Shown here: positions 4,740-15,853 of the stretch, piece after piece
Layout of the letters: every line of letters starts with the position of its first letter
Position numbering within the stretch: position 1 is the first letter of the stretch
NCBI GenBank assembly: GCA_020891255.1
Contig: BQFW01000007.1
Location: forward strand, 434,001 to 498,000
Reading direction: 5' to 3'
From: Entomortierella parvispora E1425
Taxonomy: Eukaryota > Fungi > Mortierellomycota
Length of the DNA: 64,000 nucleotides
Position numbers and translations under genes: made by a program
The notes under the pieces: generated by a model
What the model saw: only the letters and a program-made list of their open reading frames with translations
Told to the model about the DNA's origin: nothing
Database searches by the model: none

Positions 4740-4790
4740 CAGTTCCCTTGAAATTTTTTTGGGTCGCACAAAACAAAGGAAGGCAAAGCA
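4740..4790 (+). promoter_or_regulatory. Upstream element shared with paralog B
   Basis: CAGTTCCCTTGAAATTTTT (4740-4758) and AAGGCAAAGCA (4780-4790) both recur upstream of the second LRR gene. Confidence 0.55.
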
Positions 4791-4918: not shown

Positions 4919-7900
4919 ATGGAAGAAACTCAAGCCTTTCGAGTGGCTGGCACAGATGAAATCGTAGCAATTGCACTTGAGCATGTAGACGGGGAGGATG
5001 GTATCTTTTGGGAGGACATCGAGCAAGTGTTTCCTGGAGCCATTGCCGTCGTCAACGAGACTCTTGAGGTCGAATACTTGCAGGATGCGAATGGTGAAAG
5101 GTAATCTAAAGGAATTTTCTTGTTAGGATGAATGAGCGATGAATTCTGTTTTAACCATAACCCTTCATTGGATCAGATATCTCCCTCTTCGAATAGGTTA
5201 CCATCCTGGGGTTGTTCTGGAAGTCATCTTGTTATCTTCCTTCAACAATCCTTCCGGCGACTCTTCTGCAGAAAACTCAACATCAACGTTCGATAATTTC
5301 TTAGCCGACCTTTTTTTATCCTCCTCAGCCGACAATATCACGACGCTCTCAAGGTCGTTTTCTAATATTGCTGTCACTGCGGGGCCGTTCACTACCCTAG
5401 AACCCTCGGACCCACAAAATGCGACCCTTGCCAGAATTAACTTGACATATACCCAGAGTCAACAAAGCATACTTGCCACCACAGCTCTGGAACTGGCTCG
5501 CGAATCTGGAATCACATTGGACCCTGAACAGATCAGCTTACTCTTCAATGCAGAGGTGGCGCGGGCATTGAGGTCCTCGCCGGAGTTTGAGAATGCGCTG
5601 TTCAATAGACTTAACCACCTCCACGACCAAGCCTCTCAGTCAGAGCAGATTTACAGCGAGTTGGCAAAGCTGCAGCGACAGATGATGGACCGATCGACTC
5701 TGATTCTAAGCAAAACCGAGGCTGTCTTGACTCAAAATTCAGATTTGGCAGAGTGTCCAATCCCTCGATTGTTTATAGTCATGCCCGAGGAGCCGACACA
5801 ATATGAACCCTTAAACTGGCTCACGACCGTGTTCCGTCTGTATTTCATCTGTGAATGTGGCGAACACACCAAAGCGTCTGGAAGCAAGATCCCCCATCAT
5901 CTCCACCTGGCGAACCATGAAGGATATGTCATCCGTGAACCAATCGAATTCTTTGAGAAATACGGTCCGTTTCTCTTTCTAATGCTGGAGCTAATCAAGC
6001 AAGGGACAACCATCACCGGTCATGCTGTGCCTCCCTTGGCCAGTTTTCAAACAGTCGAACTAGGTGCTTCCGGTCAACATCCAGTTGCAACCGTCATTGA
6101 CAGAATCGACTACTCTCTTGCGTGTATTCACAACCAGATCAAAGAATATCAAGCGACTTCACAAACAGATCTTGACGACACAGATCATCTCATACCAACG
6201 ACACAACAAGAGCTTGCCAATTACCTGAACAATATTGATAGTATCAATACTGTCGACTTGGGCAACCTCAAATCATTTTTGGAGGCTGCAGAAGGCGCCA
6301 ATCTTCGTGGAATCTTGCGCCGAATGATAACCTTGGACGGTCATTTCAAGTGGGTCTGTCCTAACCACTATCGATCAGGATGCGAAAAAGCGCACACTGA
6401 GAAACTTCACCAAGAAGTTCAGCTGGCTGGCGGAAAGTTTGATGAACAGTTGGGAAAAGTTGAGATTGCCTTACGCTCCAGTAATGATGCAACTCGGTTC
6501 TTCAATGTCATGTGTAACGTCAAGAGCGTCCTCGAGCTCATCGTGGATTTGAAGTGGGAGTGCGATAAAAAGGATCTTGAAGCGCTAGAGGTAGCGATCA
6601 GGAAATCATTAGTATCAATTCTTCATGTTGACATCCAGAAGTTTCAACCAAGTTTCATTCGCAGGCTATCGTCAATATCCGTACGATACGAAGGATTCTA
6701 CCGTCTAATGGACCCCCCAAGCCTGAAGTCACTCCATATGGTTCTTCCACAGAACATCGTCAAGCTTTCGAATTTCACACCAAAAAAGCCGGGCCACATC
6801 CGCAAGGTTTCCTTTGAGATAGTTGTTGGATCTTATGAAGGATATCCCGGGAAAGAAGTGCGAAGCCACACAGAGGTGCTCGAGACCAACGACAAGGTGA
6901 CCACCATGTACATATGGGACACCTCGATCAAAGAAAGAGGAGCCTATCCTTTATCAGTGGCACTCAAGACTAGCTCGGCTCTTACCTCTTTGCGCTTGAC
7001 CAACAACTTGGTCGGAGAGAAAGGAACTCGGACATTGTCTGAAGCTCTCAGAAGCAACGAATCTCTGGAAATATTGAGGCTAAGCAACAATTCAATTGGA
7101 GAGAAAGGGGCAAAGGCTCTGTCCACAGCACTCAAATCAAACTCGACAATAACCACGTTAATCTTGGACAACAATTCAATTGGAGCGAGCGGGACTCGAC
7201 TGCTATCCGACGCGCTCGAAGTGAACGAGGTTTTGACTACTCTGGACTTGCAAAACAATTCAATAGGCGAAAGAGGAGCAAAGGCTCTGTCAGTGGCCCT
7301 AAAGGTCAACTCGACCCTCGCCACTTTGCATTTGGGGTTCAACGCTATTGGTGAAGTTGGGGCCCGGGCGATATTTACGGCCCTCAAGAACAACACTGGG
7401 CTTACTACGTTGAACTTGAACGACAACTCGATTGGAAAGAAGGGGGCGCGGGCGCTATCCGAGGCTCTCAAGATGAACTCGACCCTGATCACGTTGAATT
7501 TAGACGGCAATCCACTTGGCGATAAGGGTGTTCAGTTGCTGTCAGAGGCATTAGAGGTCAACGAGGGTTTAGGGGCTTTGAGCCTGTGGGACAGCTTGAT
7601 CGGGGAGATTGGAGCTCTGGCTCTAGCTAAAGCACTCGAGATCAACAAGACTCTAGTATCTTTGGACTTGTGGGGCAATTCGATTGGAGAGAAAGGAACA
7701 AAAGCACTCTCGGAGGCACTTGAAATCAACAAGACTTTGGTCACTTTGGTTTTGGACAAGAACTCGATTGGAGAGAATGGGGCTATAGCACTGGCCGAGG
7801 TCCTCAAGACAAACCAAACCCTGACCACGTTGAGAATGGAAGCCAACTCAATCGGAGATAAGGGGGCCGAGGCAATATCGACAGCACTCCTGAGAAACAG

Positions 7901-8087
7901 CACATTGACGACTCTCCACTTGTGGGATCGATCGATCGGAGAGGTGGGGGTGGGGGCGTTGAGAGCAGCACAACTGTCGAACGCTACTCTTATCGACGTC
8001 GACTGGAACGACAGCTTGTCAGTAGAAGACGAAGACCAATTGGCGAATCGTTCCATTTTACAGTGTGTAGAACCCCATGAAGAATGA
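4919..8087 (+). CDS. RNI-like LRR protein A (N-terminal putative beta-grasp domain, coiled coil, TORNADO1-C-like domain, 13 LRRs)
   Basis: Exon 1 is 4919-5100 (MEETQAFRV...), the phase-2 intron is 5101-5176, and exon 2 is open to TGA 8087. It contains PIPRLFIV, FRLYFICECGEH, HHLHLANHEGY and DGHFKWVCPNHY, then 28-aa repeats of the type LxxLxLxxNSIGEKGAKALSEALKxNxT. Confidence 0.9.
6897..7988 (+). repeat. Intragenic array of 13 x 84-bp LRR units
   Basis: 1092 bp = 13 x 84. The first unit is degenerate and the remaining 12 match the consensus. Confidence 0.9.
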
Positions 8088-8804
8088 AAAAGGAGATAGA
8101 CTTTCAAGCAACCAGATGTGTCTCTGTCCGTGTCATTTACCAAACCCAGGCACAATCCCACCTTGATACCTCGAGCGTCCTGGATTCGTAAAAAGTCAAT
8201 GCTCCCTCAATCGCTGCTGTATCAACTTGATTTAATGCTTGTTACGACTGTACCTTTTATATAAGCATGTGCACTATATATATACTATTTCGCCGCTCGA
8301 TCCCCGTCTACCATTGTCTCCTGACCGCGCGACCTGTACTGTCCACCAGGAACTAAACTGACACTGCGGGAATATGTCTCACCATTACCATTCGAATGCT
8401 CTTCCCGATGAATGGTGAATGAATGCAACTTCTCATCAGTAAGAATGTGACGCAACCATACGTCTTTTTTTAACTTCCTGGTGCAGATTGAACTCGCCTT
8501 TTCTCTGGTGGCGGTTCAAACCAGTTCAAGCTGTACACATCGCGGTATTTTCTCCAAAACCGACTACCGTACGTTGGCGAGGCTTTTGAAGGGCTACCAA
8601 TTGGACCTGACCTGAATGGGAGAAGAATAAGGATTCTTTGTAGCGGTGGTGACCGAGCATTGACGAAAGACAGATCCAGCGCTGGATGAGTCGCGCTTTA
8701 CTGTTTGATCAAGAGAGCAATAACAACGCGTCAGGAACAGATGTGATGGGGAGCAAAATCAAAAATAAAGCAAAGACAGACACGCCTGGACAATGCATTG
8801 GGTG

Positions 8805-8861
8805 CAGTTCCCTTGAAATTTTTCTTGTGCAACATGCAAACACCAAAAAAAAGGCAAAGCA
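8805..8861 (+). promoter_or_regulatory. Upstream element shared with paralog A
   Basis: CAGTTCCCTTGAAATTTTT (8805-8823) and AAGGCAAAGCA (8851-8861), in the same order as upstream of gene A. Confidence 0.55.
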
Positions 8862-8870
8862 GCAGGATGG

Positions 8871-8932
8871 TCGACTGGATTTTGTGTTTGCCCTCGACTG
8901 GATTTTGTGTTTGCCCCCGATTGTGTTTGCCC
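8871..8932 (+). repeat. 23-bp tandem direct repeat (2 exact copies plus a partial copy)
   Basis: TCGACTGGATTTTGTGTTTGCCC at 8871-8893 and 8894-8916, then CCGATTGTGTTTGCCC. Confidence 0.9.
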
Positions 8933-9036
8933 TTTTTACTTTCTTCCCAACTCTGCCACCACGCCTCAACTTCTTTGCCCGCTCAGCATTTTCATTATTC
9001 TCATCCCTCACCTCTCTTCAATCTCATACCAGGGCC

Positions 9037-11633
9037 ATGGAAAAGACCCAAGCTTTTCGGGCGGCAGGCACATCTGGAATCGTCACTATCGACGTGGAAC
9101 ATATCAGTGGACATAACGTCGTCTTTTGGGATGACATCCAGCAAGTCTTTCCAGGGGCTAGAATTGTCAAGAATGGCACCTCAGCAGTGACTTTCATGAG
9201 GGATTCAAACGGGATAAGGTAACAAAAAGGAAACCTGGCTTGCGAGTGGGACCCTCCTAACCCAACCGTATGCTCTTCTCTAGATTTCAGCCGCACCGCA
9301 TCAAATGCTTCCCAGGCATCGTCTTGGACGTTGTATATGATACTCCTGCTGATTCTCCAGTTCCTTTGCACACGACTCTCTACAAAACTCCAACTCTTAC
9401 ACCATCACCGGACGTCAAAGATAATCTTGCACCGATTCCCGTCAAGGTTTTTCTTCCTGGCTCTGACATTGCTCTTCCACCAAGCTCCAGCATAACGACT
9501 TCACCGCAAGAGATAGCCCTAACAAAAGGAGAAACAACCCACGCCTCGGATGCAGTGGCCACAGCCATTGAATTACCCGACCAATCCCGGACGCAGCTGA
9601 CCACAGGACAGCTCACGTCGCTATTAAATTCACAGCTGGCGCAGGCGTTGACGGCCAAGACAGGATTCGAGAATGTGGTAATTCGCGGACTAGGTGCGAT
9701 CCACGACCAAGCAGTCCAGACACAACAAATTGCTCGGGAAGTTTTCGAACTACAAAAGCAGATGAATGACCGATTAACCATGATCCAGAACAAAACGGAG
9801 GCTATTTTGACTCAGCAGTTTGAACTGGCCGAATATCCAATCCCTCGATTGTTTATTGTACTGCCGGAGGAATCAACAACATACAATCCCGCCAACTGGT
9901 TCGGCACAAAGTTCCGCTTGTACTTTATCTGTGAGTGTGGTGAGCATACTATGACGGCAGGAAGCAGGACCCCGCATCACCTTCACCTGGCGAAACATGA
10001 AGGATATCCCCTCCGCCAACCACTCGAGTTTTTCAGCAGATATGGCCCATATCTCATGCTGATGCTTCAGATGATCAAATTTGGAACTTCTGTCGCTGGC
10101 TATGTTGTACCACCCTTGTCTAGCCTCAAGGTGGTTGAGCTGAATGCTTCTGTCCAACAGTCTGTTGAGACTATCACTGCCAAGATTGACTACTCTCTCA
10201 AATGCATTGAGGATCAAATGGAGAAGGAGAAGGAGCCACCAGTAGGAAATCTGGACGACATGAACGATCGTACACCGGTGGCGCAACAGGACATGGTCAG
10301 CTGCTTAAACAATATCGAAACCCTTGAAGGTGCAGATCTTCGGCACCTGGAATCATTCTTGAAGACAGGGGATGACAAGGTTCTTGGTAACCTCTATCGA
10401 ATGGTTACTCCAGATGGCCACCTCAAATGGGTGTGTATTGATCATTATCGGGCTGGATATCAGGAGAGACACACTCAGAAACTGCGAAATATTGTCTCGC
10501 TGGCCGGCGGAAAATTTGATGAGCAATTGGGAAAGGTTGACATCGCTCTACAGTCCAGTATAGCTGCCGCCGAGTTTTATGATTCCCTCTGCAAGGCGAA
10601 AGGTGTTGTTGAGCTCAATCTGGATATGAGATGGGATTGTACAAAGAGAGATTTGGAAGCACTGCAGGATGCGCTCAAAAAATCCACAATCTCCATCGTG
10701 TATATTGATGTCCATCGGTTCAGATCAAGCCTTTCGAGCAGACTTTCGGCACCCTCACTCAAACATGCAGGACTTTATCGACTACTGGAGCCTGCTAATT
10801 TGAAATCCATCCACCTTGTCCTTCCAAACGATTTTGGCAAGGTTTCCAATTTCACGCCAAAGATACCCCCTCATCTTCACAAATTATCGTTTGATATTGC
10901 TGTCGGATCGTCGAAAAATAAGGAGCTTAGAGTACTCGCAGAGGCGCTCGGGAACAACCCTGCTCAGATCACTTTACATTTGCGGGATAAACCCGTCATT
11001 GAAACAGGAAGCCTGGCTCTCGTCCGAGCAGCCGAAACCAACGCGACTGTGACCTCTCTGAATTTGTTTCGCAACTCAATTGGCGACAAGGGATTGCAGG
11101 CATTGTCCGACGCACTTAAATGGGACTCGAACCTGGTTTCGTTGAACTTACAGTCTAATCTGATTGGTGACAAGGGCGCGCGAGCACTCTCTAAAGCACT
11201 CATGACGAACACTACTCTGACGTCGCTGATCTTGCTTGCCAACTCGATCGGATCCAAAGGAGCTCAGGCCCTGGCCGAGGCGCTCAAGATCAATAGCACG
11301 CTAACTGACCTGAATCTACAGTCCAACTCGATTGGAGAAAAGGGGGCACAGGCAATAGCCGAGGCACTGAAAACCAACTCCACTTTGACTTCATTGAACT
11401 TGGCCGCCAACCCGATTGGAGTGATTGGTAACCAGGCACTTGCTGAGGCACTCAAGGTCAAGACCACCTTACTCAAATTGGAAATCAGTCCAGCTGGGGG
11501 AAAAGGGCCGTTCGTTCATGCTGGAGCAAGCAAATCTAATCCATCACTTGCCAACATGACCACCAAAGGAACAGCTATGCAGCTAGCACTGGAGGAGTCG
11601 TTCGGTCGTAGGAGAGTTTCGAATCGCGAATAA
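9037..11633 (+). CDS. RNI-like LRR protein B, tandem paralog of A (6 LRRs plus a degenerate tail)
   Basis: Exon 1 is 9037-9218 (182 nt, the same length and phase as in A) and the intron is 9219-9283. It carries the same motifs: YPIPRLFIVLP, FRLYFICECGEH, HHLHLAKHEGY, DGHLKWVCIDHY. LRR units span 10965-11468. Confidence 0.9.
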
Positions 11634-12080: not shown

Positions 12081-12813
12081 AACAACGACGTGTTTTGTTT
12101 GAAACGCACACACAATTTCAGGTTCATTGTTTTTCATGTTGGGCACGTCTGTCTGTTCAAGGTACAACGGGTATAAGGTACAATGACAGGTAGGGTTCTG
12201 TGTGCTAGATAAGGGTGCAATGTACCAATGTATCATCCAGCTTGTGTTTGTTGGTGTTGTCAAACAGACGGCGATGCACAGTGAGGGGTGATCGGCGACC
12301 CCTGTGTCTGGAGTGCGACAGTGGCGAATGGCGCGAAGGACAAAAAAGGGAGAAAGTCGGTTGATGGACCGTGTATGGACGGTGGACAGACGGTTGTAAC
12401 AAGTATCCGCCCCCTGAAGCAATAATTATTGCCCTGTCACTGACAAAGACAAGGAGACACGAGACAGCAAGACAGACAGGCGTGCGTGCTAATCCCATTT
12501 AAGGTCAGCCCACATCGATCCCTGCTCATAAAACCTCTCTTTCTTTCTGGCGATCTGTCTTTGCCCTCCTTCTTCATCCATCCTTCCATTGCTGAACATT
12601 ACCCTGCATCCTCGGCGAATCCCATCCGCACTCTTTGCATTCTCTTCTACCCCCTTTCACAATACCCACTCTTGCATTCCCCCCTGGTTCAAGTCATTCT
12701 TGCTCTGCAGGGCTCTCAGCATTCAGAATAACACAAAGCAAACAAACTCCCAAAACGTGCTTTTTCCTCCTCCTTGCTCGCTCTCCTCTTTCCAACTTCA
12801 CACCCCAACGACC

Positions 12814-15800
12814 ATGCCCACCCAACTCAGAGAGTCGGACTATAGCACCAATGCATCTCCCCCCGTCTACTCGAAGCCTCGCCCAGTGTGCCCTGATATG
12901 CTAAATAACGGCTTGAGGACTACCACCTTACAGGCAAAGCTTAACAGATCAACCAAAACCACAACGACAGTACCAACAGCCACGTTGCCACTGGCAAGAA
13001 AGCTCCGTGTGGCGGTAGTGGGGTCTGGTCTTGCAGGCCTGACCATTGCCCACCTCCTGTCGTCGCTACACGAGGACAACGGCCAGGGCGATCAGGGCAT
13101 CGACGTCGAGCTGTTTGAGAAGGCTCATAAACTAGGTAAGCAAAACTGCCAGGGGAAAGGAAGAAAAAAAAAAAAAAAAAGGAGACGCAACGGCAGCAGT
13201 CGCCATGCACGGACAGACAAAGCAGACTTGACCGTTGCACTGACACAATTAAACTTGACCCCTCCCCCAGGAATGGACGCCGCATCCTTATCTGTGACTT
13301 GTCCCTGCGAACGATGTTCCGTTGCCGCTGGACGGGGCAAAGGAGATCCCAACCACGAGCACGTTGAGGGTCGCATGGATGTGCCCATGCGTAGCTTCTT
13401 TCCAGGTGAGTTTCGGCTATTGCCGTTGCCGCGATGATTGTGCAGGGCAGCGAATGTACCGAGGAAGAGAGGGGCCTCAAATGGATGACGAATGGGGACC
13501 GAAACGGACCTTGAATCAGCCGAATTGAGCGACTGTCGGATTCGCGAATCCGCCTGAAGTGATCGAAGGGTAAAATTTCTTTTTTCTGCGATCGCAAGAC
13601 GAAGCTGGACTCGAGACCCCAGCATTTGCTCTTTCAGGAGTGCTGACTAAGGTGGATGGGGGGCAGGATGGCGAACACGCGTTCATCTTTTTGGTTGCTT
13701 CTCTCGGCAACGATCGGTATCCTTACACCTGTAGGCTGTTGCTAACCTCCCCTCCTATTCTAGAATATTATCCCGCCCTCGTTCGACTTTATCGCTCCAT
13801 CGGCGTCAAGTTCCATGACGCCGACAATACCCTCTCCTGCTTTGATGTCACTTTCGACAACACCTCAGCCTGTCGATCCACCTCGAATGTCAACATCGAG
13901 ACCCCATACTTGTCATCGAGGTCCTACCGTGTTAGTGCTGATCATACTATCACTCTTCCAGATCTGCCTCCTCTCTCGATCCTCAACCCATACCCATTCG
14001 GGCGCCGCCTCCTCGGCTACTATCGCATTGCCCGAGATTACGTCAAGATGTTGACAGTCTCCAAGGAGTTTATGACTCAAGGAAGGATGATGGAGATTGG
14101 CAAGGACCCCTCGGAGTGGGGCAACGGTCGTCAAGTCAGTCTGAGAGAGTTCTTGGTTTCCGGAGGATACAGTCACGACTTTTCGGCCTTCTTTGTGCCA
14201 CTGTTCGCCTGTGTCTGTACCTGCAGCTTTGATCGAATGATGGAATACCCAGCCTGCGTAGTTCTGGAGTATGTTGCAAGATGCATGCCTTTTGGACGAA
14301 TGCAGTTTGTCACTTCAGGCGTTCAGGAAGTGACGGAGAACCTGTCCAAGAACATCAACACGATCCATTACAACACCATGATTGAAAAGATTATTCAGGC
14401 GGAACCAGGACATGGCGAAGAAAAGGGACCTGTGGTTCTTGTGGACTCGCATGGAGTACGGAGGACGTTTGACCATGTCATTTTTGCCACGCAGGCGAAC
14501 CAGGCAGCGGCGACCTTGGCAGGACAGAGGGCAAGCAAGCCCTTGCCAAAACCATTCGTTACCTCACGAGAGACCGACTATGACGAATCGAACTATGGTC
14601 GTCGCGAGGAACATGATCTTACCGACCCCGAGACACCTCGAGATGTAGACGAAGAGTCAATTCCAAAGGACCATCCCTTTTACGACCAGATCCAGACTCT
14701 GTCAAAGTTCCCATATGAGCGTACGCAAGTGGTTTGTCACACGGACACATCTTTCTTGCCCAAGGATCCAGGTGCATGGAGACTCTTGAACATTGCAAAG
14801 TCGACGACCGCGGATATCTTGGCCTCGCCTCTGGACAGGGTTACTGCAGAACTAGAGATGCAGGAGCAGGGCTTGGAGCCGTCAGCAATTACGACCGCGC
14901 TTGAGCAGGAGCAGGTCGGGACAAAGAACAGAAAGTCGAACCAATCTTCAGCATCCTCGTCATCTTTTGGATCCAGGACGCAGAGTGGCTCAAGTACACC
15001 AAATTCGACAACAGCGTCTCAAAGCCACAACTCTGCTATGGCAACTCATATCATGAACAACACTGCTTCGTCTTTGGGCTCGACTACAAAGTTCCTTCAG
15101 ACGACCAACCCAATCTTCCAGCCCAAGCCCGATTCTGTTATCTCTTCGGCTTGGTTTGAACGTGCTGTCGTTAACCCGGAATCGATCAAGGCTGTGGATG
15201 AGCTCGATCGTCAAATGGATGCACAGGCAGAACGTTTGACCGCCTCTTCGAAGGATTCTCCATCTGATCCAGCATCTGTCTCGGACCGTGTCTGGTTTGT
15301 GGGGAGCTATGCTTATCCCGGAATTCCTTTGCTCGAAGGTTGTGTTGTAAGCGCGGTGCAGGTCATGGAGCGGATCGTGTCCACGGAGCCATTGCGCCAA
15401 CTAGCAGCACTGACGACCGCGGCTGAAAGCTCGTCGTTCCTGAAGAGGGATGCGCCGATGCGAGAACGACGACTGAGACGAAAGCACGAGCAGGAGCGTC
15501 AGCAACAGGAGGCAGCTCTCCTCATGAAGAAGGGCTACCGTCCACCCACGGCGAGTGAAGTCTACTTCAAGAACGCTTGGAAGGACACATTGGAAGATGA
15601 ACGGATCTGGGAGGAGCAGGAACAAAAGGGCCATACTGACCGAAGCCTTAACAAGGATGATGAAAGAGACGAGTGGTCAACGACGGTGGGCTCTAGAAAG
15701 AAGAAAACTGCGGCGGTCGGATCCTGGACGTCGAACGTATATGTGGAAGTCGGATGGATGTTGGTGCTCTACCTGGCGGCGATTGTCCAGTGGTGGATGG

Positions 15801-15853
15801 TCTTTTTGCTGGAGAGCGCAGGTGTGGATGGCAGCCGGTGGGCTCTTGCCTAG
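12814..15853 (+). CDS. FAD-dependent oxidoreductase (amine oxidase/COG2907-like NAD/FAD-binding protein), 3 exons
   Basis: Rossmann motif VAVVGSGLAGLTIAHLL, then ELFEKAHKLGMDA, DVPMRSFF.EYYP, FDHVIFATQA and WFVGSYAYPGIPLLEGCV. Introns at 13136-13270 and 13406-13763 restore the frame. The C-terminal helix is hydrophobic. Confidence 0.85.

Follow-up and report, generated by a model that had tools for sequence, protein, structure and literature searches.

Among the described systems closest to the locus discussed here are the NOD-like receptors (NLRs). Those of animals are cytosolic proteins with a central nucleoside triphosphatase (NTPase) and C-terminal leucine-rich repeats (LRRs) of the ribonuclease inhibitor (RI) type. 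Fungal NLRs join a NACHT or NB-ARC NTPase to WD40, ANK, TPR, or HEAT repeats, and LRRs have been reported not to be used by them (PMC5658179; PMC12258605). In the soil fungus Entomortierella parvispora, 26 NAIP-like NACHT NLRs have been reported (PMC12258605). Here we describe two neighboring, intact genes of E. parvispora strain E1425, A (4919-8087) and B (9037-11633), which lie on the + strand of a 64,000-nucleotide (nt) stretch of contig BQFW01000007.1 (positions 434,001 to 498,000; hereafter, the window). In each of the encoded proteins, neither of which has an NTPase, a small head is followed by a linker of low complexity, a long helix, a core of about 220 residues with conserved cysteines and histidines, and an LRR horseshoe. 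A and B belong to a Mortierellaceae family of head, core, and repeats, of which a literature search found no description. Our preferred reading, to which we give a probability of about one half, is that they stem from an ancient duplication within a family of soluble cytosolic receptors or adaptors that is specific to Mortierellaceae and would signal through self-association without nucleotide exchange.

Two long open frames of the + strand, 5139-8087 and 9270-11633, each belong to a two-exon gene. In gene A, exon 1 (4919-5100; 182 nt, ATG at 4919) encodes most of the head and is followed by a phase 2 intron (5101-5176; GT at 5101, AG at 5175-5176) and by exon 2 (5177-8087; 969 codons plus stop). 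Gene B repeats this arrangement, with a head-encoding exon 1 of the same 182 nt (9037-9218; ATG at 9037), a phase 2 GT...AG intron (9219-9283), and an exon 2 of 782 codons plus stop (9284-11633). In each gene, the frame is restored by this acceptor only, and the intron position of gene A is matched in paralogs. The exon 1 products are 56% identical, and those of exon 2 are 45% identical over 784 residues. Within exon 2 of gene A, the long helix, a putative coiled coil in the AlphaFold2 (AF2) model, spans 5595-5729, and the core domain, delimited by alignments and the model, spans 5730-6392 (221 residues). Irregular N-terminal LRRs with a cap (6393-6905) lead into 13 canonical 28-residue repeats (6906-7997). 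In gene B, the core lies at 9810-10469 (row 3 of the trimmed core alignment), and six canonical 28-residue repeats followed by one degenerate repeat occupy 10974-11477. An earlier note on this DNA, made from the letters alone, had claimed a shared first exon and a common architecture for the two paralogs, and our reading of the sequence agrees with it on both. The exons were searched separately; because the intron interrupts the head, this domain was analyzed in exon 1 and in full-length homologs from databases. Neither protein has a predicted signal peptide or membrane segment.

The only Pfam matches of A and B are to LRR families, the best being LRR_6 in exon 2 (expect value, E, of 3e-31 for A and 2e-22 for B). 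Among sequences in the PDB, the repeats best match ribonuclease inhibitor (2e-40), followed by NOD2 (1e-28), NLRP proteins (1e-24 to 1e-19), and RanGAP (6e-21). The LRR_6 and ribonuclease inhibitor matches place the repeats in the RNI-like LRR superfamily. Their earlier description as RNI-type is thus supported, as is the count of 13 versus 6 repeats, which a motif count reproduced. In gene A, the repeats recur with an 84-nt period and share only 62-71% nucleotide identity, so they must be old. A scan for the Walker A motif (G....GK[ST]) found none in A or B, and no NTPase family of Pfam matched either protein at E <= 0.1; this upholds the claim that they lack an NTPase, and none was found in seven larger paralogs either. 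Thus, A and B have the C-terminal, sensing-type repeats of NLRs and other STAND (signal transduction ATPases with numerous domains) receptors, but they lack the central P-loop NTPase. The repeat matches, at 2e-40 for ribonuclease inhibitor and 6e-21 for RanGAP, could also be taken to mean that A and B are housekeeping RNI-like proteins of one of these kinds. However, the genes are multi-copy, carry an additional head and core, and are confined to Mortierellaceae among the matches listed, and nonsynonymous divergence (dN) in the family is about 10 times that of a neighboring gene. RanGAP itself was rejected as an identity on the same additional domains, the approximately 35 loci in the genome, and the weaker match to RanGAP than to ribonuclease inhibitor. 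We consider a housekeeping role the least probable of the explanations discussed here.

The approximately 575 residues that precede the canonical LRRs have no match in Pfam (E <= 10), NCBIfam, or PDB sequences. We aligned 25 paralogs from the E. parvispora genome and trimmed this alignment to the core, where four motifs stand out: PIPRLFIVLP, FRLYFLCECG.HT, H.HLA.H.GY, and LGNLYR..T.DGH.KWVC.DHYR. A and B carry all of them in the forms PRLF.VLP, FRLYF.CECG.H, H.HLA.H.GY, and W.C..H. Three core residues are invariant across the 25 paralogs (C225, H243, and C394 in the numbering of gene A exon 2), and three more are nearly so (C227, H247, and H397). We propose a structural zinc site because this pattern is conserved; the sequences suggest that these residues form it. 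In the AlphaFold model of gene A, a 45-residue helix (residues 2-45, with a predicted local distance difference test score, pLDDT, of 87-91) precedes a core of the alpha/beta type, and the core passes directly into an LRR-like region. The pLDDT is 83 for helix, core, and first LRRs together and 76 for the core alone. Residues 267-359 of the model align to LRR proteins with VIA Z scores of 5-6.7. For the core fold, Foldseek against the PDB gave best E values of 0.15-0.37 (0.37 for the core alone), a wide VIA-align search with the core alone reached Z 4.5 on helices only, and a second VIA look reached Z 2.4. A profile of the core found nothing significant among PDB sequences, and a protein atlas look-up with the core returned no usable match. 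Neither sequence nor fold therefore links the core to any entry of Pfam, NCBIfam, or the PDB. One candidate, PF27087, appeared in the precomputed annotation of relatives and was rejected as a core family; it is LRR_TMOD-LMOD, an LRR model.

These properties of the core bear on two further explanations. In the first, A and B would be adaptors or enzymes of protein modification, with a catalytic or E2-binding (E3-like) core and LRRs that pick substrates; the invariant cysteines and histidines could then be a catalytic dyad instead of a metal site. Designs that combine LRRs with a ligase are known, such as the F-box/LRR proteins and the bacterial LRR-NEL ligases. Conserved single-copy members of the family would also suit such a role. 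For example, the most divergent paralog, 100% identical to EMPS_04277, has about one ortholog per species, in Mortierellaceae only among the matches listed. However, Pfam shows no F-box, RING, HECT, NEL, or other ligase signature (for the F-box, no match in either exon of A or B), and no fold match of the core exceeds Z 4.5. We regard a modification role as unlikely. In the second explanation, A and B would descend from Roco or TORNADO1-like proteins that have lost the Roc domain, and the core would be a COR or post-COR domain. RNI-type LRRs are combined with a large central domain in both cases, and a Roco protein of C. tepidum is in the list of fold matches. That match, however, pairs model residues 267-353 with Roco residues 3-100 and so involves only the LRRs, no Roco chain is among the best 50 fold matches of the core alone, and no Pfam family, COR and Roc included, was found at E <= 10. 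We rejected a COR or TORNADO1 origin of the core on these Pfam and fold searches and consider a Roco relationship very improbable. The Roco/COR and the housekeeping RNI explanations both fail the tests that were run.

At the other end of the protein, the first exon encodes the motif M..TQ.FR..G....I.....G..V.FW.DI..VFPG, and 17 copies of this type of exon were found in the genome. A and B carry the family head motif (Q.FR...W.DI..VFPG), mostly within their 182-nt first exons. In a protein atlas based on a language model, residues 1-85 of a homolog (P0006), which hold its head, fall closest to TDP-43_N clusters (0.93; 187/256 shared features), and the next neighbors are PB1, CIDE-N, and Par3 N-terminal clusters. 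All four are ubiquitin-like domains that polymerize head to tail. We treat a TDP-43_N-like fold of the head as a lead.

The family to which A and B belong is large. The N-terminal region of A gave 42 matches at about 35 loci of the 38.9-Mb genome, including a cluster of at least five copies on genome contig C1 (2.62-2.65 Mb), and about 7 of the roughly 35 loci are fragments or have in-frame stops. Among 1.84 billion representative sequences, a profile of the core matched 1,786 clusters (50% identity), 775 of them at E <= 1e-30, and the named members among the matches listed are all from Mortierellaceae. The earlier claim of a multi-copy family is thus confirmed in the genome as well as in public data. 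Most members have RI-type LRRs, but the same head and core are followed in some by Sel1 or TPR repeats (P0113, P0116), and some members have two cores. At four loci on contigs C10, C2, and C5 (L043:5061-7883, L044:7393-8325, L044:3069-3932, and L047:6424-8289, all on the - strand), the head exon is followed immediately by Sel1 repeats (up to 17), with no core between them. The head is therefore a mobile module that is common to several families of repeat proteins. In Mortierella alpina, one annotated protein (P0139, KAF9948251.1; JAAAHZ010000768.1, L049 1206-6204) has the head, the core, irregular LRRs, and, through a predicted splice, a C-terminal NACHT domain (6.6e-23). The predicted intron ahead of the NACHT part is 125 nt long, its donor, branch, and acceptor sites are good, and the unspliced frame stops at once. 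LRRs placed ahead of the NACHT domain would be an unusual layout for an NLR.

How the pair has evolved can be seen by comparison with an 11.3-kb metagenome contig (L048; ENA ERZ27249417 k141_2216227) that is collinear with the window. It holds orthologs of both genes (A' and B', with 72% and 74% nucleotide identity) and of the next gene downstream, an NAD(P)-binding Rossmann gene (12589-15853; PF13450, 2.3e-06), which is 78% identical at the nucleotide level. Since A' and B' are collinear with A and B, the duplication predates the split of the two species. With the Rossmann gene as calibration, we calculated the ratio of nonsynonymous to synonymous divergence (dN/dS) by the Nei-Gojobori method. 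It is 0.29 for A against A' (63% amino-acid identity), 0.21 for B against B' (66%), and 0.03-0.07 for the neighboring gene (89-96%). The numbers of repeats in A and B are unchanged in A' and B'; gain or loss of repeats was observed solely among paralogs. The pair is thus conserved one-to-one, is fast-evolving yet constrained, and arose by an old duplication. Upstream of A', a third LRR gene is represented by its 3' end, which occupies the first 405 nt of the metagenome contig. This 3' end has 76% nucleotide identity to that of gene A and no counterpart in the window, and tandem copy number therefore differs between the two species. The earlier note had also described relics flanking the pair. 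A tblastn search of the whole window with both proteins (E <= 0.01) found no related remnant outside the two genes, where it returned a single chance-level match of 25 residues, and these relics are therefore unconfirmed.

Elsewhere in the family, most paralogs are also old (core identity to the nearest paralog is 30-60%), but two pairs are young (89% and 91.5% core identity). In a young pair on contig C1 (synonymous divergence, dS, of 0.34), dN/dS is 1.12 on the predicted concave face of the LRRs versus 0.39 in the rest, with a threefold higher dN (permutation P = 0.005), and the two copies differ by exactly three repeats. The excess on the concave face and the change in repeat number together argue for receptor-like diversification where copies of the family are young. 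Against this background, the picture of a birth-and-death family with gain and loss of repeats, which the earlier note had drawn for the pair, is better applied to the family as a whole. Fragments and in-frame stops, the third copy on the metagenome contig, and the young pair with its three-repeat difference all accord with it. In contrast, A and B are indeed tandem paralogs, but with their old duplication, one-to-one synteny, stable repeats, and dN/dS of 0.2-0.3 they do not support it.

Under the preferred reading, the concave face of the LRR horseshoe would bind a protein ligand, and a zinc site formed by the conserved cysteines and histidines would hold the core in place against the first LRRs. 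Self-association would come from the helix and from the head, the latter possibly with a TDP-43_N- or DIX-like fold (ubiquitin-like and polymerizing head to tail). Binding would then alter the assembly state of the protein, and this alteration, not an exchange of nucleotide, would serve as the readout. On this view, the family would consist of receptors or adaptors whose sensor repeats, LRR or Sel1, can be swapped. Their ligands may be non-self molecules, which would mean a role in immunity, or the fungus's own proteins, which would mean a role in regulation. A receptor or adaptor role of A and B is plausible, and by analogy with receptors of similar architecture they may act in immunity or in sensing endosymbionts. 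A number of results weigh against this reading. The Pfam model of TDP-43_N (PF18694) found no match to the head when searched against the genome, nor did a profile of 18 exon 1 products match anything in the PDB, and it is because both searches miss the similarity that the head fold stays a lead. Conservation is the sole basis of the proposed zinc site. At predicted concave-face positions, dN/dS shows no excess in B (0.17 versus 0.20 elsewhere), and the excess in A is mild (0.54 versus 0.26). The NACHT fusion in KAF9948251.1 is a single annotation with a predicted splice. Lastly, 6 of 32 family loci lie within 30 kb of a NACHT gene where 2.7 would be expected (P of about 0.05), and these loci are not independent.

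Another alternative, raised in the earlier note, is that A and B are innate immune receptors, with LRRs that sense molecules of bacteria or endosymbionts and a head and core that trigger defense or cell death without a STAND NTPase. A large family in one lineage, with pseudogenes, differences in copy number, repeat indels, and faster change of the concave face in young copies, would fit such receptors, as would the one predicted NACHT fusion and a swapping of sensor repeats that resembles that of fungal NLRs. Strain E1425 also hosts a Mycoavidus endobacterium (PMC8759367). However, A and B are conserved one-to-one with stable repeat numbers and a dN/dS of 0.2-0.3, dN/dS is never clearly above 1, and no known death or effector domain was found. 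Linkage to NACHT genes is weak as well. The genome holds at least 70 NACHT matches, many in open frames of 1,200-2,400 residues and clustered at C1:0.22-0.75 Mb and C13:2.15-2.36 Mb, and the NACHT gene closest to A and B is 122 kb away. We think it unlikely that A and B are immune receptors, and for this pair the immune explanation is not favored over a regulatory or modification-adaptor role. A bolder form of it would make head and core an NTPase-independent signaling engine, in which a microbial ligand (for example, from Mycoavidus) on the LRR or Sel1 repeats would free the zinc-stabilized core and allow the ubiquitin-like head to polymerize into a signaling filament. This we consider a long shot, clearly less probable than a role as immune receptors in general.

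Shared regulation of part of the family is suggested by a 19-bp element, CAGTTCCCTTGAAATTTTT, which occurs on the + strand at 4740-4758 (179 nt upstream of the gene A start codon) and in identical form at 8805-8823 (232 nt upstream of the gene B start codon). With up to 2 mismatches, the genome holds 11 sites, compared with 1 for a control pattern. Five of the 11 are located 135-232 nt upstream of family starts, namely those of A and B and of three genes in the C1 cluster (C1:2625079, C1:2629508, and C1:2646462). On the metagenome contig, both A' and B' have retained the element upstream (positions 1294 and 5576), within flanks that are about 25% diverged, and this retention points to shared regulation of that sub-clade. 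The six further sites are C1:778077, C5:1038389, C8:2808521, C4:1332585, C13:2162396, and C13:2622970. The promoter region of gene B also contains two perfect tandem copies of a 23-nt unit, TCGACTGGATTTTGTGTTTGCCC, at 8871-8916.

The family indicates that, in a fungal lineage that diverged early, RI-type LRR proteins have expanded on another chassis, one with no ATPase but with a confidently modeled core and a small head that may polymerize. If its members sense non-self, receptor-like LRR systems would have arisen in fungi independently of STAND NTPases, and the family could offer a way to study how endobacteria are managed by Mortierellaceae. If head and core did act as a signaling engine, NLRs, TIR/death-fold adaptors, and Roco-like proteins would be joined by a fourth kind of cytosolic immune receptor. 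Even if the family does not sense non-self, the core would still define a large family of one lineage, and its fold merits a structure.

Each of the known systems resembles A and B in part. With ribonuclease inhibitor and other RNI-like proteins (LRR_6), they share the 28-residue repeat consensus, but ribonuclease inhibitor consists of LRRs only, whereas in A and B about 575 residues of head, linker, helix, and core come before the repeats. Roco proteins and plant TORNADO1 likewise join LRRs to a large central module, but neither a Roc GTPase nor a COR domain was found in A or B by Pfam or fold search. Any likeness to TDP-43_N, and with it to the DIX, PB1, and CIDE-N domains, is limited to the head, where a homolog lies nearest the TDP-43_N clusters of the atlas (0.93), by a link invisible to the PF18694 model and to the PDB profile search. 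Fungal NLRs have in common with the Mortierellaceae family a modular build with interchangeable repeats, lineage-specific expansion, and some pseudogenes; the family differs from them in using LRRs and in having no NTPase. Animal NLRs (NOD2, NLRC, NLRP) are similar to A and B in being cytosolic, in their C-terminal RI-type LRRs and small N-terminal domain, and in forming a multi-copy family. However, A and B lack the NACHT or NB-ARC domain, and an unrelated Cys/His domain stands in the place of the NTPase.

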